A DNA stretch of 64,000 nucleotides, from the NCBI GenBank assembly GCA_051530055.1, contig CM121341.1, forward strand, positions 14,238,784-14,302,783. The letters run 5' to 3'. This document shows, piece after piece, positions 8,291 through 62,546 of this stretch (position 1 is the first letter of the stretch; every line of letters begins with the position of its first letter). Under the pieces are notes generated by a model that worked only from the letters and a program-made list of their open reading frames with translations, had not been told where the DNA came from and made no database searches. Position numbers and translations under genes: made by a program. The stretch is from Neoechinorhynchus agilis. Taxonomy: Eukaryota > Animalia > Acanthocephala.

Positions 8291-9011
8291 ATGAGTCAAA
8301 GGATTTTTCTTATATTACTTCTTGCTACAATCTTACTTAAAGAATGCGTCCCGAGTGTTACTGAAAAGGTAATCCGATCCCAAAGGGTCTAATCACTGCG
8401 CGTAGTACTGACTTCGTTCAATAGAGATTATATTTTATCTTTTAAATAGATGTACCTACTTGTTTTCCACTTCGAGAATAAGATTTCGCTACGATTTATC
8501 TACAATATTGCGCTAAACGAAGAAATTCGTATTTGTTATGAGCACGGATGTACGATTCCGAGATTTCTACATAATTATCTAGATGACCGTATCACAAGAC
8601 GATCACGAAGCTCTTAATCGGAAATTGAGTGAAATTGTCAGCGATTCCAGCAAGGACATCAACAATGAAGCAAAGGGTCTATGGGAACATTACAAAAAAG
8701 TCTTCGGTCAGTATTTCTGGAAAACACAACGGATTCTACATATTTATCCTTGTAGGAAAGTTGGAGTACTCTGCAAAAGAAGAAGCGGAGCGATTTAGTC
8801 TATTTACAAAGAAACTTCTGGGTATTGTTGATGAGCATCAGAAAAAACATAATTTGAAAGAGGGTGTAGTTAAAACCCTCGGTCTTGATAAAATGGCTGA
8901 TTGGGTAAGCACTGCATTTCCTAGGAATTTATAATGTTAATTTTTTCCAACTAGACCGAAGACGAGATAAAGAAGTTCAAGGAGTCACTTTCTGAAAAGA
9001 AAAGCCACTAA
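8291..9011 (+). CDS. Secreted stand-alone I29 (cathepsin propeptide-like) inhibitor protein, 4 exons
   Basis: Signal peptide MSQRIFLILLLATILL. GT-AG introns 8369-8582, 8707-8755, 8905-8954. Spliced product LWEHYKKVFGKLEYSAKEEAERFSLFTKKL..TLGLDKMADWTEDEIKKF matches the I29 ERFNIN/GNFD pattern and stops with no protease domain. Confidence 0.8.
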
Positions 9012-17500: not shown

Positions 17501-18318
17501 TATTCCTTAAATGCTTCACAATTCTTCGAGAACGCACAATGTCCATCTCGATCGCAGTTTGAGCAGTGCCTTTTGTTTTTGTCACATTTGGTACTGTTGT
17601 GGTCTTGGCCACAAAAAGCGCATCGCGTGACCTTGGACGGGCACCTCTGCTCCCAATGTCCCCAACATTGACACCCACTGCACCGAGGAAAGTAATAGTC
17701 GTCGCAACGCGAAATCTCGTTTGAAGTAAATTTAACCTCCATGGATTGGAAGAAGGATCGCTCAGTGCAAAGTGCGTCCCTCCGTTCGACCGCAGCTTTT
17801 ACAATAGCTTTGGGAATATACTTCCCCGTTCTTGATGACTTCAGGAAAAAGAGCAACTTGACTCCGAATTTTTCCTCGAACGCTATCTTATCTGCATCAT
17901 CAATATCTGGAGAGAGCCCAGAAACGATAAAGGTTGATTTATAACTTGTGTTCGAAATTGTCACACCTGCAAGGTTGCAGTTTTTCTTGATGAAAGCCAG
18001 ATAAGCCTTCATAAAATCCGCTGCTATAAACCTGATTTTCAATATTCCTCCGAAATAGCTGATAGATGAAATGCGATGGATATCATCCTTAAACGATTTG
18101 AGCCACGGAGCCAGATAACGTCTGTGTAGCTCTTCTCTGGGTTGTATTGGATTTGCTTCGATTCTTATCGTATTGGGCCATCTTTTTGAAGGCACCTCCA
18201 CGAAGTGCATACTGTTTTGATCGCTGAGAAGTTGACTCCGAATGTCCGGACGCACGGGAATTCTCAGAACATTGGGTGGCGTTCGCACCGCAACAGCTTG
18301 TTGCGCACACATTTGACG
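14562..18318 (-). mobile_element. LINE A: apparently full-length I/Jockey-superfamily element (ORF1 with 3 zinc knuckles; ORF2 APE-RT frameshifted)
   Basis: Intact 448-aa ORF1 (CSGCQCWGHWEQRC, CAFCGQDHNSTKC, CSNCDRDGHC); APE IAQWNAGG..FVQETK..GDFND; RT VRPISI..HGFLPGKS..FDISKAFD and MYADD. Flanked by tagttgtttct at 14551-14561 and 18319-18329. Confidence 0.92.
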
Positions 18319-37600: not shown

Positions 37601-38730
37601 AAAGAATCCAAGTAAGGATGTCCTTAAGCAAGGAGACTTCTTTACCGGTACCAAGTGGAGAATTAGAGAGGGAAGATACTAAACTATCAAAAAAGATTTT
37701 TCCGGAGGTTTAATGGGAAGCTTAGAGTTGTAACCATTATAGGAAGATTGAGTCTTCAACTCCTTAGAGGAAAAGCCGTCCGGAGAGAGAGGAGTTTGAT
37801 GAGGATAGATTTCTCTATTATTTTTATTATAGTAGACCCGCTGCTTCGATGATAAGGAATCGTAAAAGTATTTTTGCGCGAACTTGCAAGAACGCGCAAA
37901 GGCCGGATGACTCTTGCCATAGCTTGCACAAGTGGCAGAATCAGAGTGAGAGCAGGATGATTTGTGGTGAGGACCTGCACAAAAGATGCATCTGGGGGAA
38001 ATACACAGTCCGATTCGTGGTGCCTCCATCTAGAACACCTCTGACAGATTATAAAATTATAGTCTTATATCGGTCGAATGTGACCCAGTATGAAAAGAAG
38101 CCCCTGCCGGAGTTAGCCAAACTCTCGGCGACATTGATAGTGGCTGAACATAGGATGGCGTAGGCGGAAGTGGCATTGGGTCTAAATAAATATTTGACCA
38201 GTCTAATTCCTAACTCATCCTCAATTTTTGCGAAAGTCAGCAGTATCCAAGTCTTGAGGAGGATTAGGTCAATAGACTGTATGCTTAAATCCCCCAACAT
38301 CTTAGAAAAGAGGTCTTTGCCTGTCACGTCGAACAATACAAATAGAATGTGAAATTTAGTCACCGAGAACCTCTTAATCAGAAAATTCATCGACTTCTCT
38401 CGACCACTAGGCTGTAGGTACTTCTCGTAGTAATTACGCGAAAAATACGAGGGGGATTTAATACCCATGGCTTCCTTGTGAATTTTAATAACAAAGTCTT
38501 CTTTTCTAACCGGACGCTTAAACTTTGATGCGTCAATAGAATGTTCCATCTGATCCCCTTGGGAAACGTGTGCACAATCACTCAAAACCTCACAATCATT
38601 CAGGGAGGATAGTAGGTACAAACCTTAAACTGGACATGTCCGAATTAAAGTTGATCTGTTGATTGAAAGGAGCGCAATTTGCATCGACGAAACAGTGCTC
38701 ATTCCCTAACTCTTTTGCTGTTTTTCGATG
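34690..38730 (-). mobile_element. LINE B: full-length degenerate I/Jockey-superfamily element with 10-bp TSD and (TAA)n tail
   Basis: TSD acattaaagt at 34680-34689 and 38731-38740; tail tattattatta on + strand. ORF1 knuckle CIFCAGPHHKSSC; APE CFQET/GDFN; RT LDINKAFD, VSQGSPL, VYADD. Confidence 0.9.
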
Positions 38731-40070
38731 ACATTAAAGTGAAGCATGCAAGCCGAATGCATGAAGGGTTTTTAAAATATAGAGTTTTCATTTTCTATGT
38801 TGGAATATAAAATATCAGTGTTTTCGAACGCGTTACTAAATTGAGTTGTAAAATGAAAACTGAAAATGCTAACGGTTTTTAAAATATCAAGCTTCGATTT
38901 CCTGTTTTGGAATGTAAAACATCTTGATTTTCAATAAATTAAATAAGAACGTGCTAACCGAATTTCAGTAAAGGTTTTTCAAATATCAAGTTTTGATTTT
39001 CGGTGTTGGAATGTAAAACAACAGTTTTTACAAACGCGCGTCTAAATTGAAATGAGGCATGCAAACCGAATGCTTGAACTGCTTTTCAAATATCATATTT
39101 TTATGTTCTTTTTTTTAATGTTAAATATCAGTGTTTTAAAAAGAGCGTCTAAATTGATTTGAAATTCAAAAAGCGAACAGAATAATGCGTTTTAAAATGT
39201 CGATTTTTATCCTATTTAGAAATTTAAAACATCATTTTTTTTAGAAATGCGCGTCTAAATTAAAGTTAAAAGAGCGAACACATGAAATTATTTCCAAATG
39301 TTTAGTTATCTTTATTAAATCACAACAAATTTATTAATCTTGAAGTCTCCTTTGTGTTACATTCAAAGATGCGTATTTTGAACGTTAGTTTAAAAAAATC
39401 TTTTAATAAGGAAGCTTATATATACACTCCTACTGTTAGCGTTGCGAAATATTTGAAAATGATTTTTCAGCTTGGCAAAATATAAAAAAGACCTGAAATG
39501 GCAACGTTTGTGTGCAATGCCGATAAATGTCAACTCGAGAATCGTGTGTGATCGATTAATGTTACAATTATTGATTCTCAATGGCGAATTGTAGCACACT
39601 CGAGTTTTATTGAAATCAACCTTGCGAATTTTCAAGGCCTCAGCCTCGTCGATACGGTCCGCGCACCCGAGTCAAGACTACCAACTTAGGTACCCCCACT
39701 TCATCCATTTTAGATGCTTGAAAAGGAGGCGGAGGCCTTGAAAATTCGCGAGGTTGATTTCAATAAAACTCCAGTGTGTTACAATTCGCCATTGAGAATA
39801 CACATCCATTCGAAGGAACAATTGGATAGAAGTATTTATTGCTGAAAAAGTAACAAAATTAATTATTTTACATATTGTGAATTCCGAGTCACACCAAGGA
39901 ATACATTATAAAACATTTTCATGTGATGCGGTAAATTGGGTCGGGGCGTTATAATTCCTTATAGGATTTATGTGAAAACCGAGCAGCTTTGAATTTTGTC
40001 AACCGAAAAGCACGTTTGCAGACATTATTTTCAATCTTTTTCAGATATCAGCACATTTATAAATCTTTAC
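38731..40070. repeat. Family R continued: about five ~120-bp subunits then a ~0.5-kb unit interrupted by a MITE
   Basis: Repeated tttt.aaatatca.gtttt..ttt..gt.ttggaatgtaaaaca; similarity to 34148-34689 and 48045-48600. Confidence 0.8.
39574..39799. mobile_element. MITE with ~70-bp terminal inverted repeats
   Basis: attctcaatggcgaattgtagcacact..gaaatcaaccttgcgaattttcaaggcctc versus gaggccttgaaaattcgcgaggttgatttc..gtgtgttacaattcgccattgagaat; absent from the other R copies. Confidence 0.9.
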
Positions 40071-41173: not shown

Positions 41174-44100
41174 TCAATAAAATTGATGACGCCGGTGCTT
41201 GTGGCGAAAGTCATCAAAATTTCGTCTCAAAGGCTTTGTGTTGTCCTTAAATTTGTTCCTGCAGTCATTTTGTCGATGGATATCATGGTCATCGCAGTGC
41301 CTTTTCCTCAGCTCCATTGGCGTTCGCTGTTCAGGATCCGTATGGTCCACAGAACGTCTCCTCGTTTCTGACTGTTGTTTTTTCTTATCAGGTTGCTCGG
41401 ACCGTCTTGTGGATGGAGAAATATAGCCACTTGCGTCCACGCGGCGGATCGGAGTGGGGTGCTTTATTGTTGAACGAATATTCTGGCGTTGGTATTTCCT
41501 TTCCTCAGCAGTCTCTGGATGAATATCACTGTCATCGCAGTGCCTCTTCCTCGGCTCCATTGGCGTCTGCTGTTCGGGATCCGTGCGGTCCACAGAACGT
41601 TTGATCGTCTCCGACTGCTGTTTTTTCTTATCAGGTTGCTCGGACCCTCTTCTGGATCGAGAAACATCGCCAGAGACGTTGACGCCTGGGATAGGACTGC
41701 AGAGCTTGATTGTTGAACGAATCTTCCTGCATTCCGATTTTCTTTCCTCATCAATCTCTCGCTGAGCATCACGATCATCGCAGTGCCTTTTCCGCGGCTC
41801 CATTGGCGTTTGCTTTTGATGATGCCTACGGTCCAAATGATTTGTCGTTTCTGACTGCTGTTTTTTCTTATCAGGTTGCTCGGAGCGTCTTCTGGAATAA
41901 ACATTAGTACTATTGTCGAAGTCGCGGATCGGAGTTGGGTGCTTTATTGTTGAACGAATCTTCCTGCATTCCGATTTTCTTTCCTCATCAATCTCTCGCT
42001 GAGCATCACGATCATCGCAGTGCCTTTTCCGCGGCTCCATTGGCGTTTGCTTTTGATGATGCCTACGGTCCAAATGATTTGTCGTTTCTGACTGCTGTTT
42101 TTTCTTATCAGGTTGCTCGGAGCGTCTTCTGGAATAAACATTAGTACTGTTGTCGAAGTCGCGGATCGGAGTTGGGTGCTTTATTGTTGAACGAATCTTG
42201 CTGCATTCCGATTTTATTTCCTCATTAATCACTCGCTGGATATCGCGGTCATCGCAGTGCCTTTTCCTTGGCTCCATTGGCGTTCGCTGTCGGGATACCT
42301 TGTGATTCACAGAACGTCTCCTAGTTTCTATCTGCTGTATTTTATTACCCAGCTGCTTGGACCATTTTCTTGATGGAGAAATATCGCCACTGTCGTCTAC
42401 GCTATGATTCGGACTATGGTGCTTTATTATTGGACGATTCTCTTGGCGTTTGGATTTCCGTTCCTTGCCAGTCTCTCGCTGAGCATCATTCTCATTTTGC
42501 GCTCCTGATTGTACAGTTGAACCAGGATCATTTTTATCACTCAGGAGGCTTACCAGGCCCTGCGATTCAGACTCTATGGCCTTCTTATTACTTTGTATTG
42601 CTCGGCTACTGGATAGCAAAACTTCCTCTATCAAATCGACGCTTGTGTTGGTGCCATCATGTTCTCTTCGTGGACGCTTCCGGTCGCGTTCAGATTCTTC
42701 ACGATTTGGTTTTCGTTGTCTGCCTTGTGGTCCACATTCCGTGTCTTTTGTGTATCTGGACGAATACTCTTGCTTTTCAGATTCACATTCCTCCAATGGA
42801 CTGAGATCAAACCGAAATCTTCGTCGCCACGTACTGTTTAAGTAATTGTTTCTTTTCTTAAATCTTCCAAACCTCCGTCGACATCGCATTGGATATTGTG
42901 TTGGTGGATAAGACCCTGATTCGTGAGCTTCATTTACTTTGCAGTTGACCGCAACGGTAGCAGCAACCAATACTTCATGCTCTTCATCAGTCAGTTGCTG
43001 GTTTTTCGCCAGAAAGTCATCGATGAATTTTTCCACATCTTCTATCGTAGGGCGAAATTCTACGGGATTTTCAATTTTTGTTGTTTCTTTAGGCGACGTG
43101 ACTTTTTTAACCGGACCATTCCACGTTGCATCGATCCATTCCTGTTCTAGTTGCCGATAATGATCGACAATATCACAGGCAGCATCGTTCCTAACGGTAT
43201 CTGCCACTTCTTTGTCCTTTGCCTTACAGGACGGGCAATAACCGAACTCTATTAAATGCTTTACAAGGCAAATTCGACAGTAAGTCGCACCGCAACAATT
43301 CATCATTGTTGGCTCCTCAATTAAATTCCAGCACATTTCACATCTGAGCTCATTTAGCTTCTCAGGACGCTCATCTTCATCATCCGGATCTCGGTCTTGT
43401 TTTCGTTTTGTCGGGTGGAACACTGCTTCCGCAGCAGTTCTTGTAATCGCATAAGTTCCTCGCGGTGTTAAATAGCAGCCAGGAACGTATTCGGTGAGTT
43501 CTATAAGTTCACTTCTCGGAATTCCCGTAGCCATCTTCACTTGAGTTATTGGAGGAAGGCTCGTGTTTGGGATTTTCGTTTCCGGAAAGTTGGACAGAAT
43601 CATTGGACAAAGGTGTTTAAAGTGTCCCGGGCGATTACATCGATTGCAGATATATGAACCGCGTGGCACCGCCGATGGGTATCCTTGATCTCCTTCGGAA
43701 ACCTGATACTGAATGCGTAACCTGAAATTTGCTGTGGCTTTTAGAATATCTTGATTTCCAGGCTGAGCAGCCAAACTGTTTGGGTTGATGGGTTCAGGTT
43801 TTTTGATTGGATATCTTGTTGCACAAACTACTCGGTCCCCAAAGTCGTGTTTATCTAATGCAGTTGTCCAGAATTTAGTGCCAGCCTGAGCATCAAGATG
43901 CTTTTTGTATTCTTCACTCATTTTGTTGTTGTTTATATCCATTGGTTCGATGACCCACATTGGTTCGTTGACCTTCTGCTGCTTTCGTTGTAAAATTCGG
44001 ACCAACAAGCTGTCTTTTTTTGCCGGTCGACGAGTGATTTTTACTTTGGAACCAGCCTTAAGAGATTCCTTGTGTGAAACATAAGTGTATTCCTTCTCAG

Positions 44101-44260
44101 TATCAGTTACGATAAATTCAATGTCCGTTGCAAACTGGGTTAAGCTCCTCTTGATTAAGACGCGTCTTTTGAATTCATGAAGATTAATCTCTTCGCCGTC
44201 GAATGGAATCGTGTCATAATCTTGGTCTTCGAGAAATTTGAAGCTAATTATAGAAGTCAT
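41174..44260 (-). CDS. RBBP6: Intronless RBBP6/Mpe1-like protein (DWNN, zinc knuckle, RING) with C-terminal 79-aa tandem repeats
   Basis: DWNN-like ISFKF..YDTIPFDGEEINLHEFKRRV..VKITRRP; knuckle YICNRCNRPGHFKHLCP; RING CEMC..CCGATYCRIC..CPSC; 1028-aa open frame. Confidence 0.88.
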   Translation of the reverse strand: MTSIISFKFLEDQDYDTIPFDGEEINLHEFKRRVLIKRSLTQFATDIEFIVTDTEKEYTYVSHKESLKAGSKVKITRRPAKKDSLLVRILQRKQQKVNEPMWVIEPMDINNNKMSEEYKKHLDAQAGTKFWTTALDKHDFGDRVVCATRYPIKKPEPINPNSLAAQPGNQDILKATANFRLRIQYQVSEGDQGYPSAVPRGSYICNRCNRPGHFKHLCPMILSNFPETKIPNTSLPPITQVKMATGIPRSELIELTEYVPGCYLTPRGTYAITRTAAEAVFHPTKRKQDRDPDDEDERPEKLNELRCEMCWNLIEEPTMMNCCGATYCRICLVKHLIEFGYCPSCKAKDKEVADTVRNDAACDIVDHYRQLEQEWIDATWNGPVKKVTSPKETTKIENPVEFRPTIEDVEKFIDDFLAKNQQLTDEEHEVLVAATVAVNCKVNEAHESGSYPPTQYPMRCRRRFGRFKKRNNYLNSTWRRRFRFDLSPLEECESEKQEYSSRYTKDTECGPQGRQRKPNREESERDRKRPRREHDGTNTSVDLIEEVLLSSSRAIQSNKKAIESESQGLVSLLSDKNDPGSTVQSGAQNENDAQRETGKERKSKRQENRPIIKHHSPNHSVDDSGDISPSRKWSKQLGNKIQQIETRRRSVNHKVSRQRTPMEPRKRHCDDRDIQRVINEEIKSECSKIRSTIKHPTPIRDFDNSTNVYSRRRSEQPDKKKQQSETTNHLDRRHHQKQTPMEPRKRHCDDRDAQREIDEERKSECRKIRSTIKHPTPIRDFDNSTNVYSRRRSEQPDKKKQQSETTNHLDRRHHQKQTPMEPRKRHCDDRDAQREIDEERKSECRKIRSTIKLCSPIPGVNVSGDVSRSRRGSEQPDKKKQQSETIKRSVDRTDPEQQTPMEPRKRHCDDSDIHPETAEERKYQRQNIRSTIKHPTPIRRVDASGYISPSTRRSEQPDKKKQQSETRRRSVDHTDPEQRTPMELRKRHCDDHDIHRQNDCRNKFKDNTKPLRRNFDDFRHKHRRHQFY
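41240..42400 (-). repeat. Coding tandem repeat, 237-bp/79-aa unit, about 5 copies
   Basis: TPMEPRKRHCDD...RRSEQPDKKKQQSET recurs; matching positions 41710 and 41947 are 237 bp apart. Confidence 0.92.
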
Positions 44261-45903
44261 CTGAATATGCGAACTTCGAATTTTGGGAGTTTTTATGAAA
44301 GCAAACGGATTATGCCCACGAAAGGTTTACAAGTAATGGACTACACGAGTTTTCAACAAATGAAAACGAGAGCTATCGATATTTATAGAATGTGGTGCGG
44401 CAAGATTTATATTTACCGAATTCGATGACTATATTTTGAACCCAATATTTGTAAAATATCCACAATGGTCGGATATTTGTTGCAAATACAAATATTTATC
44501 CGTTTACGGTGGCTTTTGTTGTCCCTGCGTTCAAGAACCGCTTAGCACTGGCATAAAACCTCGAACTACCTTGAATTTCATAAAGTCAAAAGGATGCATT
44601 GTATTTTTGCACCTATGAAATCGATCTTGACAGAAAGTGTCTTTTTTATATAAAAACGTAAGGATGATACCACGGGTTGCAAGTATTAAAAAAATGCAAA
44701 GCAGTCAAAACGGGAATGATGTTTCTGTATTTATTACAATTGCTTACTCTAGAACGGTTCATTTGTGATGACGGCAATTTATGATCGCTTTTAGACTTCA
44801 AATCGTTTTTAAACTATGCCATAGATACTAAATTCTGCTCCCATATCAATAAAGGTATTAGGATATCGCGATTCATAAAGCGCTCACCGTATAGATTTCG
44901 ATCACAATGTGTGGTGTCAACATGGACGTGTACCTCCATTAGTAAAGTGAAGCCGTACCTAAAAAATTGCTAGTGTTTTGGAACGATAGCTCTTATCCGT
45001 ATACAAGATCATAAATGTTCTCGTCGAATATGACGACTTAATTTCTCTAGCTGATCAATGTTTTGGAAAATTCCAATAGTTTGTATCAATTTATTGGTAA
45101 ATTACTATTGCATCAGCCTGTATTTTCAAACGCTTTCTATCTCGTTTAAACGAATACATTTATTCATCTATATTGGTAACAATCGATATTGACAATCAAC
45201 TCTAAGTTATTTTATCTGTTATTTATTTTGCTCAGTCCTTAGACCCCAATTTAAAGGATCGCAGCATTTTACGCATGCAATTTACACTTTCATGTACATT
45301 GCTAAAATGTAGAAAATAGCTTATCATAACAGATACGCTTTCGTTTTTCAAAATTTCTAAAATAATTTTTTTACAGTTATATTGTGCAAAAATATTTCCA
45401 AGTTGTTAGTTATTCTAATGCATTTTAAGTCCAGAAGTCAATAATAAGCTTTTATTTGCTACAAAAATGAGCAAGCAGCCAATAAAAGCAAGCCTCGACA
45501 GAACTTTTTGTACGATGATTCGATAACCTTAGCGATTTTTTTGACAGATGTAGCGATGAATCGGTTGGATTATTTGCGCTTATAAAAATACGCAGTAAAT
45601 GAAAAAACCAGTATCTCCAAATCACTTTCATCATTACTAAAATCTTGTTGATTCAATTACAAAAATACTTTTTGGTTTTGTCGGAATTCTAGTAAATTGT
45701 TTCTATTGGATAATCTTTACATATCTTTGCTTCGGATGCCATCGTCCTCTATCTCGAACGATAGATCCGAAGAGCAACTTTACAGAATCGCGATTTTGTT
45801 GTTTTCGCGGCACAAACATCATCTTCCGGAAAACAAACATCCTTGACGTACAATAAAGACATAAACCCAAAATTTATTAAGACTACTTAAAATCCTCAAA
45901 GGT

Positions 45904-47257
45904 TCAATCAGAAGAGAAAATCCGTCTAATAGATTTTACAAGATTGCTCTCCGGCGTATGATTTTTCTTTATATATTGAAGTAGACCAGGAAAGCAGCCA
46001 AGATCGCGTTGACTCATAACGAACTCGGCTACTTTATCTTCACTCACTCCTTTGATTTGAACAAGAAATCGAGCGACGGCTTCTCGTACGCTGATTCCGC
46101 CATCACGATTTATGATAGCGCGTTTTGCGTATTTTTCGTTAAAATTGTCGAGAGGAATTCGTTCCATCGATAAATTAAAATGTTTATTCAAATATCTGGT
46201 CATTTCAGTAAGGTATCGAGCTGTATCCGTGGGATTTCGGCAATATACTATTTGGAATCCATCCAGGACTAATGCATTCACGCAAGCCTGTTCAATTGTG
46301 GATTTTTTAAATCCGTCAGCTTTATTCGATGGTATTTCGATTAACACTACGACATTACATTTTTTTGTCTGATCATGAAGCTTCATAAGACGCGTTTTTT
46401 GCTGTTGAAATCTTCCATCGATTATCGACGCTACAAGATCACGCGAAGATTTTCGTTCGATCACATAAGACATCAATAGAGAATTAGTTTTATGATGACA
46501 AAATGCGAAATCCCCCAGCGATAAACGATCACGTCTATAAGGACATTTTAATTTGTCTATTCAAAGAATCAGGAACTGCCAACCGGAGTTCGAGATCCTA
46601 TCGATAATTCACTAAAAAGGCTTTTGGATCGTTCTGCTTTGTCTACTGAAAGTACAACTTCTTCGAAGATTAACTTTTCGTCGTTTTGAGTTCTCTTTAC
46701 GCTTTTTTTTAATGATTTTGTGAGCGAGGCCGTTTTTGATGCCACTTGAACGATTGACGACTCCTTTTGTTTGATATTTCCAATCGCACGTTCCAAATGC
46801 CGACAAATTCCATCGCCAAAGCCCTTCAAAATGCGACACTCATTAACATTTTGAAGCGGAAGTGGATATCGCTTAAGGATCAACAAATGTACTATTAAAA
46901 GATTTATGTTCATCATACAAACGAGGGTTTGACTACAGAAACAAAGTCATCATTATGATAAAGAGCTCGTGCTAGAAACCCTCAACGAATTGCACCCAAG
47001 AAAAAGGATTTAACTCAATTAAAAAGATTACAAAGAGCATAAAGCCGTGAGAACATTTGCTGAAATCTCAGCGAATCCAATGCCATTGAATAGGTCTTGG
47101 CTTTGTTCACTCGACCCAAAGATCTTCGTGAGTTCATACGATATTTCCTGATCACTGAATTTAGATATTTCACGATTTGAGCGTTTAAAGGCTTCTCAAG
47201 CGAATGTCGTCTTCGTCGCCATTGCCTCGAAGGTGTACATTGAACCAATCGATTCAT
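45904..47257 (-). CDS. MUS81: Compact MUS81 structure-specific endonuclease with two atypical interruptions (46873-47066 and ~46557-46603)
   Basis: N-terminal HhH KTYSMALDSL/RYPLPLQNVNECRILKGFGDGICRHLE; nuclease domain VLSVD..LSLGDF..VIERKSSRDLVASIIDGRFQQQKTRL. Confidence 0.9.
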
Positions 47258-47700: not shown

Positions 47701-47840
47701 GGCGACACTGAAAGCATTCGGGCGAAAGTTGAAGACGAGGATGGCGAATAATTATGTTATATCTTCAAAATAAAACTCCAGCATAATATCGCAAGTAAAC
47801 AAAGAAAAGGTTTCATTTAAAAAATATATTAATAGAGATT

Positions 47841-48005
47841 TGTTGTTATTTAGGTCGCTTGTCGATACCCGAGAGGGATCATTAAAGATGAATATATTTC
47901 GACTGATTGAACCAGTCATTAGCAATTCAAATACTTGTAAGTTTTGAAACAGGATTCGTCTTGAACGATCCCTCTTGGTATCGACAAGCGACCTAAATAA
48001 CAACA
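47841..48005. mobile_element. Hairpin element with ~40-bp inverted repeats
   Basis: tgttgttatttaggtcgcttgtcgatacccgagagggatc versus gatccctcttggtatcgacaagcgacctaaataacaaca; the arm motif also occurs at ~26385. Confidence 0.8.
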
Positions 48006-48044
48006 TATCCAACCACCCGAATGCAATCCTCAACATAATGTAGG

Positions 48045-48600: not shown

Positions 48601-48658
48601 TGGCTTTCTAACAAAAGTTATTATTATTCGTTTTGTTTGTAGATTGAATTATTCATGT

Positions 48659-48800
48659 TTGTTTATGGCGGAAAAGCCGAAGGAATTTATTAGATCGGAT
48701 ATTTCGGCCGAATGAAGCACTTAAACAACGTTGATAAAGGCACGAGATTGTGCAGAAATATCGGATTTAAGAAATCCCTTCAATTTTCCGCCATAAACAA
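48659..48800. mobile_element. MITE with ~45-bp terminal inverted repeats
   Basis: ttgtttatggcggaaaa..gaaggaattt..gatatttc versus gaaatatc..aaatcccttcaattttccgccataaacaa. Its core ttgataa.ggcac.agattgtgc recurs at ~1880 and ~4140. Confidence 0.8.
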
Positions 48801-49239
48801 GCATTATTATTTTTTTTAACACGTTATGGGTTATGTCGAGAATTCAAATGCTTATTTTAAAGACCAATTGATAATAAATCCATATTCAGCAGCGGCTCTT
48901 TTTTTCCTCCATATTCATTCTTCGAGGTGCGCGGTGATCGTAAATGACAACTGATTGTGATCTCGGGCGGGGAACATAAAGTGATATCGCTTTTCAAATT
49001 CAAGACTACCAATGCTTTTTAGGGCCAGCCCAGTGGATGCTAATAGTCAACTGAATACAAGAATAAATATCATCAAGGAAGTTACAGTCGAAATCCAAGA
49101 ATTATGCAATATTTAGACAACTTTTAGAAATTAAAAATGCTAAACATCCTGTCAAAAATTCCCTTTTCACCCGCAATTAAACTGAAGCGTATATTTTATA
49201 AGTCCAGTATTTACTTTCTCGAATATTGTTTGGCGTCCT

Positions 49240-51911
49240 CTACTCCATCATTTCCATTACATTTCCAAAATCCGAGTAGAATTTCTAAAAAGCATCTCGA
49301 TAAAACACAAAAGCATTTCAGCTCCATACCTTTAAGTACTCTTCCATTTGCTTTATGGCTGTCAAAGTGCTAGTTTCTCGTATTGAACCGTTTGCAAGGA
49401 TCGGAATGCCGATATCAAATCCATTCATTCCAAGATTTAGGCCAAAGGCTGTACCAACGCTAGTAAAAAGAATTTTCCAATTCCTGCACAGAAAATTCTA
49501 ATCATTAAATAAGGTCATTTTAATTCACGTTTAAAAATATATAAGAAAACCTGTATCTTGAGGCTGTTTCGAGTAGCGACCATGTTTGCTATTAGGGCTG
49601 AAAAGGAGTTTGTTATGAAATTAACTCGGTTTGCATATAGAATCACAGGACCGGCATTTAATCTAGGCATATGATTAACTTCGTAATATGATCTAAAGGG
49701 GACATTAGAATGTTGAAAAGCAATAGTAGTTTTTCTCACGGATAGTTTGGGTTAGCTGCAAGTGCTCCACTGACACATGCAAAACACGATCTCGAAATGG
49801 ATGCTGCGAAATTGTTGTCGTTGTAACCAACGATGCGACTAAATAGCCGTTTTATGAAACGCGATCCAGCACCATAGGAAGCTTGGCTCGTATTCTATTT
49901 GTAATATTCGTGTGAATCATAATGTTTATGGAGGGACTATTCTGTCGGTTGTCAAAATCTACAAGCCGATCGCAAAACTTTTTATTTTGAAGATGCTATA
50001 CATCGAAGCCCCTTGAAAGAAATTAATATAAAATAATTATTAAACCCTTCCATTTTTATGAATACAAAATTAGTTATCTTTTCTGTCGGAAATTCGCCGG
50101 AAATGTTGAATTTAACATGCGAAGATAATAAGCTGTAAAATTGGATAGACAAGATGGATGTCAATAAACTCTAATAATTAACACATTTATCAGGGGACTA
50201 AACAAACAAGTTTTGCGTTTACAGAGTCAACATTACGTTCGATAGAGATCAATCTTTGCCTACCTCTGTTGCCTCTACAAGAACAACAGCTTGAATCATG
50301 CCGTGATCTTTTCGTTCAGTATTTATCAGACTCTAATAGAAATTCCGGTACAAAATCTTTGACTATATTAAAGTGCAGGACAAACCTGAATCATCGAGTA
50401 AGCCGTAGCAATACTTTCCATTCTCGATCCAGACACGAAATCCGTCGACCACGATTTATATGGGTTACGATCAACTAGGTTTAGATCGAAATCCACGATA
50501 TCTTCAGCTTTACTTTGGCACATTGATGCCAGAATATCTTTTATCCCGGTAGACTTTAATGGTTGAGTTTCTTTTACGACATCCTTAGGTTTGTTGAAGT
50601 TAAGAACATCGTCGAGATACCCAATCAATTGGCCATCATTTCCGATGAAAAACCAATCCTTCTCGGTCTCTTTTTTTGAATGACGTGGCGTTTCAAGTTT
50701 TTGATTTTCTTTATCAACGATCTTCTAATTTAGAACTCAATTGGGAAAGTGCTCGAGAAACAAACCTTATCAACTGCATCTTTTTTTCCATAGATTGGAA
50801 TGCTATAATTTTATAATGAATTATTCCTCCATGGAGCTTCCAAAAACTCACAGTTCGGTTTCGCCGTTGAATTTAAATTCGTCATTAACGGTGCGGTCGA
50901 AATGAATGGCGAGACTTGGGATTTTCGCCATGGGCATATCTTTATAAATTAAATTGGTCTGGATCTTTGTTCGACCATCAAGCATTGATTTTCTAACAAA
51001 TACACGACCGGCAATCGTCAAATCGCGATCGAACCAAGTGTGAAGATTTGGTGTACCGTAGATTGCGATTCCAAGCCGAGAGAAATTCGTTGATCCTCCT
51101 CGATCACTGATGGGTTTTAACTGTAGTCATAAAAATTATGGATTATGTCATTTGGACCTTTGATTATTTAAGAAAAATGAGCAACTATAACAAAACTTCA
51201 TCTCTATTTATTACGAACTCCTGTAGAGTCGATTACTTAAATTTAGCCTATTAAACGAAAAAGTTTCTCGGTAATTTCAAAGAGTACATTTAATCTATTT
51301 TGGGCAAAATATGAGTTCAATTAACTTTCTTCATTACCATTTCTATTTTATAATCATGCCTAAAAATTTCCTTTTATAGTCTTCTTCGTTGTCTTGTATT
51401 GAGTTTGGTGAAACCGATTAGCTATAATTACTTTATCCCGTTCTTTTTCGGAGTAAGCTTAGTATTTAGGAATGCTTTAAGAAAGAGGCGAACTATGGGC
51501 ATTTTTAAATTTACTGAATAGCAAAACGAACGCAGTCCATGAAGTTAGAAAATTAGCGCATAACTCACAATTAATCCTGGGGCGTCGATTTGACCACAAG
51601 TCAAAGCCATTCCATTTCCAGGCGCATAATTTCGACCAATGTTAAACGCATAAAGGCCACTCAACTTCTTAACATAATACTGAACGAAAAGCGCTTAGTT
51701 TCAACTCAAATCTTCCATGTACCTTACAGATTTTCCATTTTCGATATTCCACGATTCGGAAAGTTTGAGCTCTTGAAATCCAGCATCAGCAAGACGTTTA
51801 ATGCATTCGTCAAGCACTGAAATTCACTGGGTTTAATGCTCGACCTGACTTAATCTTACAATGATATTGAGTTGGGCAAGCCGATGAAAAATTGATAAAG
51901 TCGTCGCCCAT
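49240..51911 (-). CDS. DNPEP: Aspartyl aminopeptidase (M18/DNPEP) homologue with metal ligands substituted; about 10 GT-AG introns
   Basis: TWFDRDLTIAGRV, IPSLAIHF, NHMPRLNAGPVI, FDIGIPILANGSIRE are collinear with DNPEP end to end; introns mostly 41-56 nt plus two of ~350-440 nt. Confidence 0.88.
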
Positions 51912-52584: not shown

Positions 52585-54220
52585 TCAATTATGCGGACCC
52601 CTTTCTCGGTACAAAGGCGACCTCGACCTTTTCCGTCTCCTTGAGTCATTCTCCCTGCGTGAACGTCGCTTTTCGGAACCTGAATATGCATGAGCCATTC
52701 TTCGAAGTTCAGTTGGAATGCATTGTGAGCATTTGTGCAAAAGATCGATCATATCCGCTGCTAAGCGCTTATCTCTCCAAGTAAAGAACGTATACGTAAC
52801 ACCGTCGGCATGAACTCCCTGAAGACGTCCCGTCCTTCCAATTCGATGAACGTATCCTTCTATTGTATTAGGAAAGTCGTAATTAATAATAAATTGTATA
52901 TCAGGAACGTCTAACCCTCGAGCCGCTATATCCGTAGCGATCATAAGTGCTCCGTTTTTTCGTAAGCGGAATTCGCTAAGGACTTCAGTACGACTTTCCT
53001 GTCGCTTTCCACCGTGAAGTGAAACGAGAAGATGTGAACGTGGAAGGGCACGCCGAAGAGTACTCATTGAATGTTCAACCACGTCTTTTGTTCGACAAAA
53101 AACTAAAGTCTTCGCTAACGGAACCATTCTAACAATATCCTTTACAGTTTCCTCAAGTAGTCTCATCTTTTCTTCTTCTCTACAAATCATTACAACTTGT
53201 TTGATTGTAAGATTAAGAGCGTTAAGCGACGTTCGATTATGATCAATATCGGCTACTCCTACAGAAGCTAATACAATATCTTCTCCGCCGAAATCGGCAG
53301 CCAAACGTCGAACACTGGAGGGCCAAGTTGCACTGAGCATTGCCAATTGTTTAAGAAAAACAAGTGGATTTCATTTAGAAAAAAGGATAAAATCTTTTCG
53401 AAATTGAAATAAACGCTCATTTACAAATGAAAGCCACTTGTTCCATCTATCCTGACGGACACAACTAAGCACTCGTCTAGTTTGTCTTTCAAAACCCATA
53501 TCAAGAATTTTATCGGCTTCATCAAGCACAACCATAGACACTCTGAAGAGGGTTGTAAAATGTTCATCAAGGAGATCAATAAGTCGTCCAGGAGTAGCGA
53601 CGTAAATATGAGCGCCTTCACCGATTTTTCGAGCTTGTTCCATCTTGGATTCTCCTCCAATCAACACGACGATCTTCATATTCATAGCATCACAGTAAGG
53701 TCGAGCGATTTCTGTGATTTGAAGAGCAAGTTCTCGTGTTGGGACGAGCACGAGACCTATTGGGCCGTCGTCAGGCATCAAAGGAGGCTGATGGCTTACA
53801 TGGACCAAAAGTGGAATCATAAAGGCTAACGTCTTTCCGCTTCCCGTAATCGCAATTCCTACATAGTTACTGCCGGATAATAAAACGGGCCACGTTATTG
53901 ATTGAATCGGCGACGGATTTGTGAAGTTGGATGACGAAAACAAATGGATGATTGATTCTTCAAAGAACACAATGGAGATTGCGCACCAATGTAGTTTCAC
54001 TTACCAGGCAAAAACTGACACTCGGAGAAAGTCAAAAGTGGCGAAATATTAGACACGTTGTTGATCAAATTAATATTCTTCTCTCGCAAATATTTGTCCA
54101 CTTCATCCTACGGGCGCGCGTCCCCTGAACCTGTGATGCGAATTGAGGACCTACCTTGGATCTGTCCGAAGTTATTCGACTGACCTCGTAACACGATTTA
54201 ACAATATCAGGATGACTCAT
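52585..54220 (-). CDS. DDX5: DDX5/DBP2-like DEAD-box RNA helicase; two 47-nt GT-AG introns plus a 96-nt non-GT-AG interruption (53351-53446)
   Basis: Q motif PSPIQ, TGSGKT, PTRELA, ATPGRL, LDEAD, SATWP, ATDIAARGLD, YVHRIGRTGR; HQPPLMPDDGPIGLVL is DDX5/17-like. Introns 54108-54154 and 53958-54004. Confidence 0.9.
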
Positions 54221-54956
54221 TCGAATAGCGAAATGAACTCTGATTCACAACAATTAACAATGTCTTTAATAATGTAGCAAACTAAGAGAGAAATCAATCC
54301 AAGTGCGCGAGGGAGAAAAGGACATTTAAAGAACCTGAAGAAGTCCGACGAAACTGACGAAATGTTGAGATGGATAAAACAGTCGATATTTTTATGATCA
54401 CCAAAGCACGCATAAATACCGAAATAGAATCAGAGCAAAGAATGGACCATTAACATTCCCTCAATTATACATAAATGCACAGACACACACATTGAAATAA
54501 AATTATTGAATTGAACGCAGTCGGACAAAAAGATTTAAAATCATCCATTCTTTTGTACTAGAACCGCGCTTAAAAATGCTCAACCTTGAAATGTGCGGTT
54601 GCAACCCGAAAGAATTTTTAGAAGAACACTACCGTTCGTCTATAATCTTCTTGCACCATCATTGTCTACCTTGTGGAAAGACTTCGAGAATGATCGCGGT
54701 AAGTATTTGCGGTGGATTTCATCTCTCGTTTATGCCGGTGTGTACGTAACTGATTTGATCGGGGTTATTCTAAAAGTTGTTTAAGTTAATGGTCGGTGTG
54801 GCATAACCAAATTTTATTGGAGAACAAAAAGTAGCCATGTACCACCTCCGAGTTTCGCCACTTGATTTTTCTTAAATTTCGTGGTACCACGAAAATATGC
54901 TTCTATTTAATGACGCTTGCGTACTTTGTGTACGTATTTGACTCTTTTGAAATATT

Positions 54957-55109
54957 AATATTGAATGGTGATGAACATAATCCCGGTTAAAGATTCTTTT
55001 ATTATTAAGAAACACTTGCAAGTTTTTATGCTGGGTTTCCCCTTTCGAAATATTCTATAATAATGAAAGAATCTTTAACCGGGGATTATGTGCACCACCA
55101 TTCAATATT
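54957..55109. mobile_element. MITE with ~50-bp terminal inverted repeats bounded by TA
   Basis: ta|ttgaatggtgatgaacataatcccggttaaagattctttt versus gaaagaatctttaaccggggattatgtgcaccaccattcaa|ta; a solo arm occurs at ~29730-29765. Confidence 0.85.
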
Positions 55110-55387
55110 TACCATTCCGGAGAATCTTCTTAATATGACTCTTGAAATATCATGGAATTCTAATTGTGGTGAGTTTACATAGTAGAAAGCTTCTAATGAT
55201 ATTGTGAAATACTACTTGATTTCCAGCCGCATGAGTGTTCACGTTTTTCAAAAAACAAAACCTGAACAATTCTAATAATCTTGTTAAATATCGATGACGA
55301 TAACCGTCAATAACGCGTGTAGGGATTCTTCCGGAGAGTATTCACTTTCGATGCGTTCGCGCCCAAAAATTGCCCTGTGGATTTTAG

Positions 55388-56101: not shown

Positions 56102-57329
56102 TCTCCGAGAGAGCGCAAATCCAATAGTCGTTCGCAATAAAGACACAAAAAGTAAGTCTAATCATTTTGATGATTTCATGTTAAGCGTGCGTACGTACAT
56201 GTGAAGGGGCGTATTTTTCCTTGATGGACTATACACCAAACAATCCAGAGCAATCGTTTTTGAAGGAACAAAGTGTGGAAGCTCATTAGTCAATGTAGGG
56301 AACTTAGGACGATGTGGGATTCCCACATCGTGCTAAGTTTCTGCTGTTTCTATCAGCAAGCAAACAGAAATCAGCGATCAACGCGCATACTCAAAGTGAT
56401 TTAATCCAAGTTTCAATTGCCAAGCAATCTTTGAAATCGTTCCAATAATCTCGAATGTAGTCAAACAATTCGAGAAAAATTGTCACTACAAGTAGTTTGG
56501 TGCGAATTTCAGTTTTATTGAATCATACACATACGCACACAATATTCTATCAATCAAGCCGTAAATCCAGTCGCTTTTTGTTCAGCCAAGCAATCAACCT
56601 TATTCCAAATTCAAGGATTACAGGCCCAAGCAATATTCAACTTAGACATGGCGCAAAATTCCCATCGGCAATTTTTTTGTTTTTCTTTCGGTTTGTACTA
56701 AAACGATCATATTTGCGGATATTCTCAAGGAGGTTTAAAGTCACACGCGTCAGAATTTTTAAATAATGTTTTTCGTCCTTTTCGTAACACAGTGCTTTTT
56801 ATTCGATTTTCCATAATTACAATGTTTTGACTTGGAAGTATGTGATTTAGAATCGCATTTGGGCGGGCGAGCAGTAATTAAAGTCGTTTGGAAACATAAT
56901 CTCACTTCGAATTTGGTGGCCTAACTGGGGTTTCAAAAAAACTTATCGAACCTACTAATAAATCAGCTTAATATTATAATCAGGTTTTTTACGGATTTCG
57001 ATCCTCTGTTAAAGGTGAGCTGAATTTTTGAACGATTTTACAACTCACTATACGAAATGTTGAGCATCGCTGAATCCTTAGTGTTGCTTTAACAATAATG
57101 CAGTTGAATGATTCTGTAAAATAAAGAATGATTAGAATCCCAATGCTTTCTTTCTTCATGATCGGGTTTTTTTTGGGAAGTGATTTAGACAGTGTTTACT
57201 CAAAAGGACTGATCAGTAATTGTGAGCAGCAGCTTCCCTTTTTTGTGATTTAGACAAGTTTAATGTATGGGGTACTTTTGCATTCTGCTACTCACCATCT
57301 TTGCCAAAATGTTGGAATCAATAAATTCT

Positions 57330-59049: not shown

Positions 59050-59450
59050 TACTCAGTTAAATCGGTCACTCAAAAAGTACAATTCCTTGCGAATCGACTG
59101 CAAGCAAATTTAAATTGTGACGAAAAAGCGGAATTTGAAAAGCTTTTCAACGTCAAAATTAAGTTTTTTCTCAATTCACGCAGATCAGGCAAGCCGATCT
59201 CGTTAGCCATGGTCGAGGGCTCTAGACAAGTTAGGGATGAATTATGCGAAAACACGTACAGTGCTTTCAACTGCTTTGAAATACGTTTCACAAAAAATCT
59301 AGCAGTCATCAGGATGACTATATTTTTCCACAGTGCAATATTTGTCATGGCTGGGGCCATTGGGCTCAACAATGTAGCTCGAACACTCCTAAATGTCGTT
59401 TCTGCGCGGAGACAGAACACTCCTCTCAGAATTGTCCAAACAAATCAATT
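59050..59450 (-). mobile_element. 3' fragment of a LINE ORF2
   Basis: MANEIGLPDLRELRKNL resembles the (E)xGLPxL motif after the RT domain. Confidence 0.4.
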
Positions 59451-59569
59451 AAATGTTGTGCAAACTGCGGAGGTCAACATTCGGTTTTCTATAAATGCTG
59501 TTCGGCCTTCAAAGACTATTGGTCTTGGGCTCAAAAAGGACAATTCAATAATAGCTCACGCTCTCGATT

Positions 59570-62546
59570 TATGCGTGAACCAATGGTCTCGGGGATTCCT
59601 GCTTCCAATTCTATGCATCCGGTATCTTCTCTTTTAGTGGACTCTACCTCAAGAAGTTCGGGCATTAATGTATCTCAAAGTACGGTCTCATCGCAGCTAA
59701 TAACGATGGAACATCTAGAATGTCGTCTGGAGGAGGTCTGTAACAAGCTACTGACGGTTATGCAAGCACGTTTTACCGAAGCTATCACTACTTTTGAGAA
59801 GAAGATGTGTACCCTCATCTGCAATCTCCCAGATATAATCTCTTCCAGCTTTCAATTTCCAAGAGATTTGAAACAAAAGAGACTCAATTCGTCCGATACG
59901 AACCCTCGATCGGCCAAAAAATCCAATATAACCTCCAATGTGACTCGATCTGATAGTGATGATTCAATAATGGAATTGGATGAAACTGATTCTGACTTCG
60001 TCACTGCAATCATCAACGCTCAAACCGCGCTTATTAATAATGGAACTGCGGCTCTTATTCCAGATGCAGCCACCAGAAAACTCTGATAGCTTAAAGGCTC
60101 AGGTAATGGTTTGGGATTTTCGGGTGTCACAGTGGAACTGTGGTGGGGCGACCAACCATAACAGGCTAGCTCGTTTCTTATCATGGGTATCAATCATTTT
60201 GCTACAGGAAACGAAAAGTATTTTTACACTGGATCAACTTTATAGCTATCTACCTCAATCGAACGTCTCAACGTTCACCTCTTTTATCACTACTCCTTTA
60301 AGTCCCGCCTCACAGGGTCTTATTTCAATTTTTCACTCTTCGCTTAATCCTCTCTATTGTCTTCCTGTATTTCACCTCAAATGTCGTATTCCATTTTCAA
60401 AATCCTTGTAAATAAGAAATTTCTCACCTTTATCAATTTATACATTAAACCTGGTTTTACCCACCGGGCATACATTGAAAGCAGAATCAAATGGCTTCTC
60501 AGAGCCAATATTGACATCATAGTGGGAGACTTCAATGATCCATCTTTAAAATGGTCTAAGGCCAATGTCAACGCAGTTCAACCTTTTTACTCTTTAACCT
60601 ATCCCTCTACTGCCTCTTTTCATAATCTCGCTTATAATACGCATTCGTTCTTAAATCTGATCATTTATAAGAGACACCTCAATTTCTTGATTCAATTCGA
60701 TCGTCAGGTGTCTCTTTTCGACCTGTTAGGGCATGATATCCTAATTTGGTCCTTTGGTCCTAACTCTACACTACGAAAAACCTACCACATATCCCCACTC
60801 AACGTTGCCTTTTTCCGCCTAGTTAGTCAAAATCTTATCTCTCTAGTATTTAATCAAAATAAGCCCTTTATCTCGTACCTTTCGTTAATAATGCTCTTAA
60901 CGAGTTAGCTAATATTTTTCTATTTCGTACGGTGAGGACCTTCTCTCGACCTTATGAAAGTCGCTCTCTATGCTTTCTTGGACGCCAACTCTTTTTGGCA
61001 TCCCTCTCATCAAATCATTAACCAGTCATTTCTGGGCTGCTCACTGTCGACAGCAGTTACATCAGAGAACTAATTTACTTGCCGTCTTGAAACCTTATTT
61101 CTCGAGCTGGTGGCACACTCTTCAAAAGAAGAGCAATCTTGCTTGGAAATCTAAAATAACAGGCTGGCTTAAGGTTTCGTCGTTTGAGGATATATTAAAT
61201 TCTATTTTTGAATTTCACTCTTCGGGTTCCCTCAAAGATATCCCTCCAACAATAATTTTTCGGAAAAAATCGCAAACAGAGTGGATTTGACCCTGGATGA
61301 TATTCTTGAGGTCTGGTCAAATAATCCAAAATTGGCGTCTTCGAATTCCAGTTCTGGTACCAAAATTTTTAATTTACTAGCCCATGATAATATCGTTCAC
61401 TTGATCGGAATGATACTAAGCTGCTCTCCTTACGCTTGGCGAGAGATTAATGTCTCACGGCGTATTTTCATTATCAAAAATAAGAAAAAATCAATTTCAC
61501 AGCCAAAGGATCTGCGCCCCATTTCCCTACAGAATCCTTTTGTCACAATTTACGAGAGAGCTCTGGCGCGTCGTTTATTTTCATTTATATCAGAGCACAA
61601 CTGTATATCGGCCAATTGCCATGGATTTCAAAAAGGAAAATCAGTACACTCCGCGCTTACTAGTATCTATGATAGTTTTAGGAACTCCATTCTGCCTATG
61701 AAAGCCTTTCTGGCAGTGTAAATTTCACAGGCCTTCGACAAGATTTCTCTCCCTTTTATAATTCGAATACTTAAAATTTTTTAGTGTTCCACATAATTTG
61801 ATCTCCAGAATTTATAATATCCTTTTTAAAAAATCTTTCTATTACGAAGATGATATCTCAAAAACTATTTTTTATCCGATCAACTGTGTACCTCAAGGGT
61901 CTCCGCTTTCCCAAATTCTCTTCTTACTGGCTTCGCAATATATAGTTAAAAACTTCAAAATTCGTGCGCAAATAAACTGTTACGCAGATGATTTAACCTC
62001 CAATATTTCTGCTCACATCGCTGCAAAACTTAAACTTTTGATTAAACAATGTTTTGATTATCTAAATGAAATTTTACCACGTATTAGTTTATCTTTAAAT
62101 CTATCAAAATCCTTATGCATCTTTAAAGTTTGTTCTTCCAAAATTCGAGAATACCTTAAATTATTCTTTAACAATTTAGTGAATCCCTCGAATAATTCAA
62201 AAATGGACAATGCGCCCTTGAAATTACGCGTTCTAGGGCACACCTTTAATGTCAACCTTTCACCTTATTACAGATATCAATAAAATGAAAAAGCTTCTTA
62301 AAGTAGGCAATAAAGTGGCTAGACGAGCCATGGAACTAGGCTTAAATGCCTCCCAAGCTCAAGCCACATGGAAAACCTGGGGTATTCCCAGCCAAATTTT
62401 CTTCTCAAGGGATCGTCGCCTTTGTTCAGTCGTTTTTCAAACACCTGGAGTCTGCCGTTTCCCTGGGCCGGAGAGCTGAAGACTGCTCCAATCGCTTAAA
62501 GCGCTGGTTGTCTATATGATTCTTATGATGAATAAATCTTGTTTTG
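59570..62546 (+). mobile_element. LINE C: 5'-truncated relative of LINE A (ORF1 C-terminus, APE, RT), frameshifted
   Basis: ORF1 tail similar to LINE A; VSQWNCGG..LLQETK..VGDFND; LRPISL..HGFQKGKS; VPQGSPLS..CYADD; ends gaataaa followed by a T-rich run. Confidence 0.88.

Follow-up and report, generated by a model that had tools for sequence, protein, structure and literature searches.

The tunicate Fritillaria borealis possesses, in a compact genome, non-GT-AG introns at lineage-specific positions (Henriet et al. 2019; PMC13326754; PMC11282704). These introns carry terminal inverted repeats, are presumed to have a MITE-like origin (MITE, miniature inverted-repeat transposable element), and are removed by the major spliceosome (PMC13326754; PMC11282704). 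In the nonconventional introns of euglenids, pairing near the ends draws the two junctions towards each other; they probably originate from MITEs and are excised as circles by a machinery that is unknown (PMC11282704; PMC12501133). The introner or invasive intronic elements of Micromonas, Amoebophrya and Polarella are short insertions bearing terminal inverted repeats that have turned into introns, some of them with non-canonical borders (PMC7789003, PMC11282704). Here, we analysed a stretch of 64,000 nucleotides (the window) from chromosome CM121341.1 (19.4 Mb; assembly GCA_051530055.1) of the eoacanthocephalan Neoechinorhynchus agilis. It contains a gene for a DEAD-box helicase of the DDX5/DBP2 family that is interrupted by a palindromic insert of 96 nt. 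On balance, the evidence leans towards a small class of hairpin-clamped AT-AA introns, which probably arose from palindromic insertions and of which the helicase insert would be one. Positions given below are those of the window; chromosome coordinates are obtained by adding 14,238,783.

The helicase gene lies on the minus strand (Table 1). When its exons are joined without the insert (CM121341.1:14,292,134-14,292,229), a reading frame of 1446 nt without any defect is obtained. It codes for a DDX5/DBP2-like DEAD-box protein of 481 aa, in which the Q motif and the helicase motifs I-VI are all intact, and whose closest database relatives are DDX5/DBP2 proteins with 41-45% identity. The insert begins with ATGGAACAAGTGG and finishes with CCACTTGTTTTTCTTAA; its retention adds 32 codons and a stop. 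The deposited annotation breaks the gene at the insert into two genes of 251 aa each. It belongs to a 46.2-Mb hybrid assembly of pooled worms, which was annotated by means of BRAKER2 from RNA-seq data (PMC12690905); the public RNA-seq data set is PRJNA1223661. The original prediction for this locus had placed a stem-loop of 96 nt between the DEAD and the SAT motif, with arms matching at 17 of 18 nt and an in-frame TGA, and had noted two normal introns of 47 nt in the same gene. Coordinates, length, arm pairing, stop codon and both introns were reproduced in our analysis.

Excision of the insert is required and sufficient for a collinear helicase product. It yields the sequence ...VRQD(R/K)QLAMLSATWP, as had been predicted, and leaves 27 residues between DEAD and SAT, which is the spacing found in all 120 DDX5-like homologues; the alignment is free of gaps. 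The junction residue is Arg in 115 of these homologues and Lys in 5. The Pfam DEAD profile matches the spliced product in positions 1-166 of 167 (152-154 bits), compared to positions 1-146 of 167 (134 bits) for the annotated half. The insert thus breaks the first RecA-like domain, and motif III comes to lie on the wrong side of the cut. It is therefore very improbable that the annotation is correct and that the gene gives rise to two products, namely a truncated DEAD half that terminates at the TGA and a C-terminal half that starts from the Met of AMLSAT. In favour of this view, each half is an open reading frame, and the gene calls for the two had support from RNA-seq. However, the last 20 positions of the DEAD profile would reside on the second polypeptide together with motif III, none of the 120 homologues is split or contains an insertion at this site, and the second half would require internal initiation 31 nt past the stop.

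Removal of a conventional intron is decidedly improbable as well. None of the possible GT-AG or GC-AG pairs preserves SAT in frame, and a U2-type intron was rejected for this reason. The sole GT-AG option (AA/GTGGCT...CTCAG/T, the slash marking the junction) results in ...VRQDRWN-NATWP: in agreement with the original prediction, SAT is turned into NAT, the invariant spacer is cut to 24 residues, and the Pfam DEAD score drops by 18 bits to 135.6 bits. An AT-AC option of 102 nt (G/ATAGAT...TTAAAC/AA, giving ...VRQ-E-LAMLSATWP) reduces the spacer to 25 residues and the score by 5 bits to 148.4 bits. Both options leave the frame open and have known terminal dinucleotides, but neither 5' end is like a U1 or U11 site, and the MUS81 junction described below offers no comparable solution.

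The helicase insert contains two arms of 23 nt each, which are 87% complementary and separated by 38 nt. The arms are mismatched at three of the 23 positions, all but one of the pairs in the inner 18-mer being formed. For a region of 121 nt around the insert, a fold of -28.9 kcal/mol is predicted (z = -2.9), and one of 200 shuffled sequences was as good. Inverted repeats of comparable quality (18-nt arm, at most one mismatch, loop of at most 120 nt) occur seven times in the window, compared to zero in each of 30 first-order Markov simulations. At the 3' end, TTCTAAAT is located 25 nt upstream and is followed by CTTGTTTTTCTT and the terminal AA; the canonical introns of the window mostly finish in (T/A)TAG. 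The insert is bounded by a direct TA...TA repeat. No further copy of it was found in the 64-kb window, and scans of the window for Rfam families and tRNAs gave no matches.

A second insert of this kind is present in the gene for MUS81. Translation and homology indicate a protein of 372 aa, encoded by three exons on the minus strand. The full protein, including its N-terminal HhH domain, requires two non-canonical removals, one of 194 nt and one of 41 nt. The deposited model is a fragment of 212 aa (46950-45904) that has lost the N-terminal exon. To our knowledge, BRAKER2 models canonical introns only, which would explain both this loss and the exact coincidence of the helicase split with the insert; most likely, the published annotation was unable to model either insert, and for this reason the helicase was split and MUS81 truncated. 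Removal of the 194-nt insert (chromosome coordinates 14,285,656-14,285,849) is predicted to join ...GATTCGCTGAG to GCGATATCCACTT and leads to a gap-free alignment with human MUS81. The Pfam profile HHH_8 then scores 47 bits, compared to 35, 35 and 25 bits for the GT-AG and GC-AG alternatives, all of which break the domain. The insert forms an inner stem of 11 bp and an outer helix of 13 bp that takes in both exon ends. Any target-site duplication would comprise at most 1 nt, and TA is missing at the 5' junction. The 41-nt segment further downstream is a possible third, ambiguous case, for which a credible canonical solution is likewise missing: the only GT-AG choice there is 20 nt long (76 versus 80 bits), and the hairpin is weak. 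Hence, two or three inserts fall in two of about seven conserved genes within 64 kb.

The two clear cases have their junction signals in common. The helicase junction reads gatAG/ATGGAAC...TTTCTTAA/acaatt, and nine junction bases (AG/AT and CTTAA/) are identical in the helicase insert and the 194-nt MUS81 insert, in the same register. We estimate that nine shared bases would arise by chance with a probability of about 1e-4 to 1e-5. Beyond these bases, the similarity of the two sequences does not exceed that of shuffled controls. It is therefore plausible to assume that the identical ends of the two unrelated inserts are a processing signal rather than the termini of one transposon family. The string ATCCTTTTT is also present in both inserts (positions 59-67 of the helicase insert, positions 58-66 of the 194-nt insert) and may be a chance match in T-rich sequence.

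In both predicted folds, the exon-terminal AG is paired with the CU of CUUAA, which places the 3' junction four nucleotides past the partner of the last exon base. To quantify this pairing, end-to-end duplex energies were calculated for windows of 34 nt around both junctions and compared to 300 shuffles. The helicase insert gave -23.0 kcal/mol (z = -4.85) and the 194-nt MUS81 insert -27.2 kcal/mol (z = -6.2), and in neither case was any of the 300 shuffles as good. For twelve canonical GT-AG introns of the window, the z-values ranged from +1.1 to -1.9; the canonical introns nearby do not show such end pairing. A total of 13 GT-AG introns were counted in the window (two in the helicase gene, ten in an aminopeptidase gene, and one of 41 nt in a methyltransferase gene), which corresponds to 13 of the 15-16 introns seen. 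Conventional splicing is thus the rule here. In a blind scan, hairpins that upon removal would connect long open reading frames were swamped by hairpins within continuous frames, and a scan for AGAT...CTTAA combined with a stem was unspecific.

Table 1. Features of the N. agilis window discussed in the text (window coordinates).
Feature	Position	Strand	Remarks
Helicase exon 1	54220-54155	minus	translation
Helicase intron 1, canonical GT-AG, 47 nt	54154-54108	minus	position and phase match first intron of Lottia gigantea homologue
Helicase exon 2	54107-54005	minus	translation
Helicase intron 2, canonical GT-AG, 47 nt	54004-53958	minus	
Helicase exon 3	53957-53447	minus	Q motif, motifs I, Ia, Ib, II (DEAD), up to ...VRQD+AG
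Helicase 96-nt insert, proposed AT-AA intron	53446-53351	minus	
5' arm of helicase hairpin, AACAAGTGGCTTTCATTTGTAAA	53420-53442	minus	predicted helix reaches outward to exon-terminal AG
3' arm of helicase hairpin, TTTCTAAATGAAATCCACTTGTT	53359-53381	minus	followed by pyrimidine run, then CTTAA at 3' junction
In-frame TGA in helicase insert	53373-53371	minus	stop of deposited 'DEAD' model
Helicase exon 4	53350-52585	minus	motif III (SAT), motifs IV-VI, RS-rich tail, stop
Deposited 'DEAD' gene model, 251 aa	54220-53371	minus	stop is the TGA inside the hairpin
Deposited 'Helicase_C' gene model, 251 aa	53340-52585	minus	start is the Met of AMLSAT
MUS81 exons	47257-47067, 46872-46598, 46556-45904	minus	translation and homology
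MUS81 194-nt AT-AA insert, ctgAG/ATTTCAG...GATCCTTAA/gcgata	47066-46873	minus	splits N-terminal HhH domain
Possible third non-canonical junction, MUS81, 41 nt between ATAG direct repeats	46597-46557	minus	registers GA-AG, AG-AT or TA-AA; ambiguous
Intergenic palindromes	1607-1779, 39574-39799, 47837-48009, 48647-48812, 54940-55126, 56301-56339		
Degraded non-LTR (long terminal repeat) retrotransposon copies	4242-5722(+), 15239-18312(-), 18503-21428(+), 35222-38621(-), 59209-62283(+)		RVT_1 and endonuclease-RT (reverse transcriptase) Pfam matches; frameshifted, overlapping open reading frames

The exact position of the cuts can be narrowed down by comparing the possible registers. In the AT-AA register, the helicase locus is divided into exon ...GATAG/ATGGAAC...TTTCTTAA/ACAATTG, and a cut one base further 3' results in the same mRNA. 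The predicted joint is ...CAGGATAG + ACAATTGG or, equally, ...GTCCGTCAGGATAG + ACAATTGGCAATGCTC; in the other register it is ...CAGGAT + AAACAATTG or, equally, ...CAGGAT + AAACAATTGG. The registers common to both inserts are AT-AA, AG-TT and GA-TA. At the helicase junction, AG-TT, GA-TA and TA-CT lead to DKQL, and AT-AA to DRQL. AT-AA is the only common register that gives the Arg found in most helicase homologues and in human MUS81. The Pfam score does not discriminate between Arg and Lys at the helicase junction. Furthermore, the AT-AA register reads like a canonical site in which A takes the place of both terminal G residues: AG stands at the exon end, position +2 is U, and a pyrimidine run precedes ...TTAA. 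AT-AA is thus probably the true register of both inserts, and the boundaries of the original prediction (AG/AT...AA/A) are those that we favour.

Several observations weigh against the interpretation as introns. The case comes from genomic sequence; it consists of two clear examples and an ambiguous one, all within a single 64-kb window. The word 'intron' is absent from the main text of the genome paper (PMC12690905), and the protein database search did not reveal any product across the helicase junction. The 5' ends ATGGAA and ATTTCA fit neither the U1 nor the U11 consensus. For MUS81, the pairing between the exons is non-significant (P = 0.09) when compared to a synonymous-codon null; with the amino acids fixed, the signal hence sits in the inserts and the junction bases. 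Moreover, any insertion into an exon regains collinearity once it is deleted on paper, and collinearity alone therefore cannot tell an intron from a young disruptive insertion. Finally, the TA...TA at the helicase insert fits a target duplication of the Tc1/mariner or MITE type.

The last two points concern the main alternative, which we consider unlikely: a foldback or MITE-like element may have recently disrupted a helicase exon. The assembled allele would then be null or a pseudogene of very recent origin, which might be polymorphic among the pooled worms, and no removal from RNA would take place. The DNA was indeed taken from pooled worms, two genes are annotated at this locus in the deposited models, and deletion of the element plus one TA leaves an intact DKQL product. 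The window contains six other strong palindromes, which are all intergenic, 39-226 nt long and mostly near-perfect foldbacks. Five of them are foldbacks of 166-226 nt with arms of 30-74 nt and whole-element folds of -66 to -140 kcal/mol; the sixth is a hairpin of 39 nt immediately downstream of an RRM gene. In appearance, all six resemble elements of the foldback or MITE type. MITE-like inverted repeats also occur within canonical introns: the 369-nt GT-AG intron of the aspartyl aminopeptidase gene (49895-50263, minus) contains one at 49971-50217. This gene (deposited as ACOME3_003377) has ten GT-AG introns, eight of 41-53 nt, one of 369 nt and one of 448 nt; a protein search with one 90-aa exon of this DNPEP gene returned a single, uninformative match.

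On the other hand, the five large palindromes differ in kind from the helicase insert in their length, near-perfect pairing and long arms, and the window does not contain a second copy of the putative element. Its arms have diverged, yet the coding sequence is faultless. Such a frequency of inserts in conserved genes also speaks against disruption, as does the unrelated MUS81 insert, which shares junction bases and geometry with the helicase insert but is not flanked by a target-site duplication of more than 1 nt. The Lys that would occupy the junction of the restored product is a minority residue among the homologues. Programmed somatic excision of a TA-bounded element from the DNA, comparable to the internal eliminated sequences of ciliates, is exceedingly improbable. 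TA...TA surrounds the helicase insert and the 41-nt segment of MUS81, but TA is absent from the 5' junction of the 194-nt insert. Whole worms were sequenced, and the assembly retains the insert. We know of no programmed DNA elimination in acanthocephalans.

According to the reading as AT-AA introns, the 96 nt would be excised from the pre-mRNA, giving the DDX5/DBP2-family helicase of 481 aa. Removal presumably occurs at the RNA level, with the spliceosome as the probable agent. The intron would have the ends A-U...A-A in place of G-U...A-G, in the arrangement exon ...AG / AUGGAA ... polypyrimidine run ... CUUAA / exon. An imperfect stem of 23 bp, lengthened through the pairing of the exon AG with the CU of CUUAA, would keep both junctions only a few nucleotides apart and presumably offset the poor splice signals. 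The intron may have originated from the insertion of a small palindrome (foldback or MITE-like) into the exon, which would have been tolerated because it could be spliced. Palindromic insertions are common in this genome, and both inserts may represent decayed instances that came to lie within exons.

An ancestral intron at this site was considered and rejected. The DDX5-like gene of Lottia gigantea (KB199905.1, 2552-2926) contains a canonical phase-0 intron at VR/PDRQ, 8 nt upstream of the position at which N. agilis has its insert and thus not at the same site. The helicase insert is therefore best taken as lineage-specific. With nine introns in about 1500 nt of the Lottia homologue, a proximity of 8 nt is expected by chance in an estimated 10% or so of cases. 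Helicase intron 1 is common to both species, and N. agilis has no counterpart at the other eight Lottia positions. The tick homologue contains a single intron elsewhere and is uninformative.

The original prediction had further proposed that the hairpin intron belongs to a class and that the helicase could regulate its own expression through it, in analogy to yeast DBP2. The need for removal, documented by the broken Pfam DEAD domain, and the existence of a class, for which MUS81 provides the second case, are indirectly supported. For the feedback loop, no support was found. The same kind of insert occurs in MUS81, whose product is not a helicase, and this speaks for an intron type found throughout the genome and against a device dedicated to autoregulation.

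It is conceivable, albeit improbable, that RNA editing licenses the splicing of both inserts. Deamination of the first and the last A within double-stranded RNA would convert AU...AA into IU...AI, which the spliceosome would read as GU...AG. Splice sites created by A-to-I editing are known, among them the AA to AI conversion in the ADAR2 pre-mRNA and the exons generated by Alu hairpins, in which double-stranded RNA surrounds an A at the position of a splice-site G. In these instances, editing affects a single site, and it is alternative splicing that is regulated, whereas N. agilis would need editing of both the first and the last nucleotide, together with constitutive removal. The contexts in the 194-nt MUS81 insert are favourable for editing at both ends: an internal loop places the first A opposite a C, and the last A, which is paired, precedes a G. 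The fold predicted for the helicase insert has the first A paired with U. The 5' neighbour of the first insert A is a G, and ADARs disfavour an A with a G at this position. No usable literature report on ADAR in rotifers or acanthocephalans was found.

The surroundings of the two genes have a number of further features. A segmental duplication of 1.9 kb with 97.8% identity (32258-34147 versus 44430-46317) comprises the intergenic region between RBBP6 and MUS81 together with the final 414 nt of MUS81. The duplicate copy holds a gene call of 99 aa (33734-34033, minus), which is a C-terminal fragment of MUS81, and the segment 32018-32269 resembles internal repeats of the RBBP6-like gene. The latter (41174-44260, minus) is a single exon coding for 1028 aa with a DWNN domain and internal tandem repeats at 41256-42288; a paralogue on the same chromosome, ACOME3_003634, is 64% identical over the first 387 residues. 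Degraded copies of non-LTR retrotransposons occupy much of the gene-poor parts of the window. A weak match to a cathepsin propeptide at 8629-8934 was considered as a further interrupted gene and discarded, as no peptidase domain follows downstream.

If the interpretation as AT-AA introns is correct, acanthocephalans would join Fritillaria, the euglenids and some dinoflagellates in tolerating hairpin-bridged non-GT-AG introns, in this case with A...A ends and in a parasite genome of 46 Mb. The two genes would offer a natural system for studying how the spliceosome handles changes at both terminal nucleotides of an intron whose junctions are held together by a stem, and would illustrate how insertions into exons are neutralised by turning into introns. 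Standard pipelines split or truncate such genes, which may in part affect gene counts and the unusually low BUSCO scores of the group.

How do the inserts compare with known intron systems? Among the non-canonical terminus pairs of minor introns, AT-AA is the commonest in animals and plants. Spliceosomal catalysis is therefore compatible with A as both the first and the last nucleotide, and the occurrence of AT-AA termini constitutes a likeness to the U12-type family. A further resemblance is that of CTTAA to the core of the U12 branch site. In contrast, the U12-type 5' site RTATCCTT is matched neither by ATGGAACA (helicase) nor by ATTTCAGC (MUS81), which agree with it only in +1 A and +2 T. 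Moreover, the U12-type branch site TCCTTAAC is located about 10-26 nt upstream of the 3' junction, whereas TTTCTTAA and ATCCTTAA finish at the junction required by homology. With 5' ends off the consensus and CTTAA abutting the junction, the inserts are not U12-type introns. Three other types of processing were rejected for the helicase insert. A mirtron is contradicted by the insert ends, which are not GT-AG, and by the lack of an Rfam match in the window. A tRNA-type bulge-helix-bulge (two 3-nt bulges and a 4-bp helix) does not agree with the predicted fold, which has the 5' junction embedded in an uninterrupted helix and the 3' junction 3 nt past that helix. An IRE1-type intron would require CNG/NNGN, which fits neither junction.

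The introns of Fritillaria are similar with respect to the hairpin or inverted repeats, the non-GT-AG ends and the failure of conventional annotation; a MITE origin would be a further parallel, which for N. agilis we infer. They differ in having mainly AG-AC or AG-AT ends, with one YAY triplet preceding the 5' site and another at the 3' end, whereas N. agilis has AT-AA (or AG-TT) and no YAY. Fritillaria-style cuts at the helicase locus (AG...AAC or AG...AAT) would remove 100 or 103 nt and break the frame, and the flanking triplets are GAT and CTT. Furthermore, non-canonical introns are the great majority in the tunicate, in contrast to the predominance of GT-AG introns in the window of N. agilis, which belongs to a different phylum, the Acanthocephala. 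The euglenid introns likewise combine non-canonical borders with junctions drawn together by pairing, for which the end-to-end duplex of the helicase insert is the counterpart. Their signature, however, consists of CAG at +4 to +6 paired with CTG at -8 to -6 and the absence of a polypyrimidine tract; here, positions +4 to +6 are GAA or TCA, and CTTGTTTTTCTT is a pyrimidine run. Euglenids are also protists, and N. agilis is an animal.

Introner elements form multicopy families with recognisable target-site duplications, whereas the N. agilis inserts are unrelated to each other and single-copy in the window. With insertions of MITE or foldback type they share the terminal inverted repeats; a target duplication is possible for the helicase (TA...TA) and limited to 1 nt for the 194-nt MUS81 insert, and the 64-kb window contains no second copy. 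Full-text literature searches did not turn up any account of non-canonical introns for either acanthocephalans or rotifers. The inserts of N. agilis are thus similar to the Fritillaria, euglenid and introner types in that inverted repeats hold together ends with non-GT-AG borders, yet they do not display the specific signature of any of the three.

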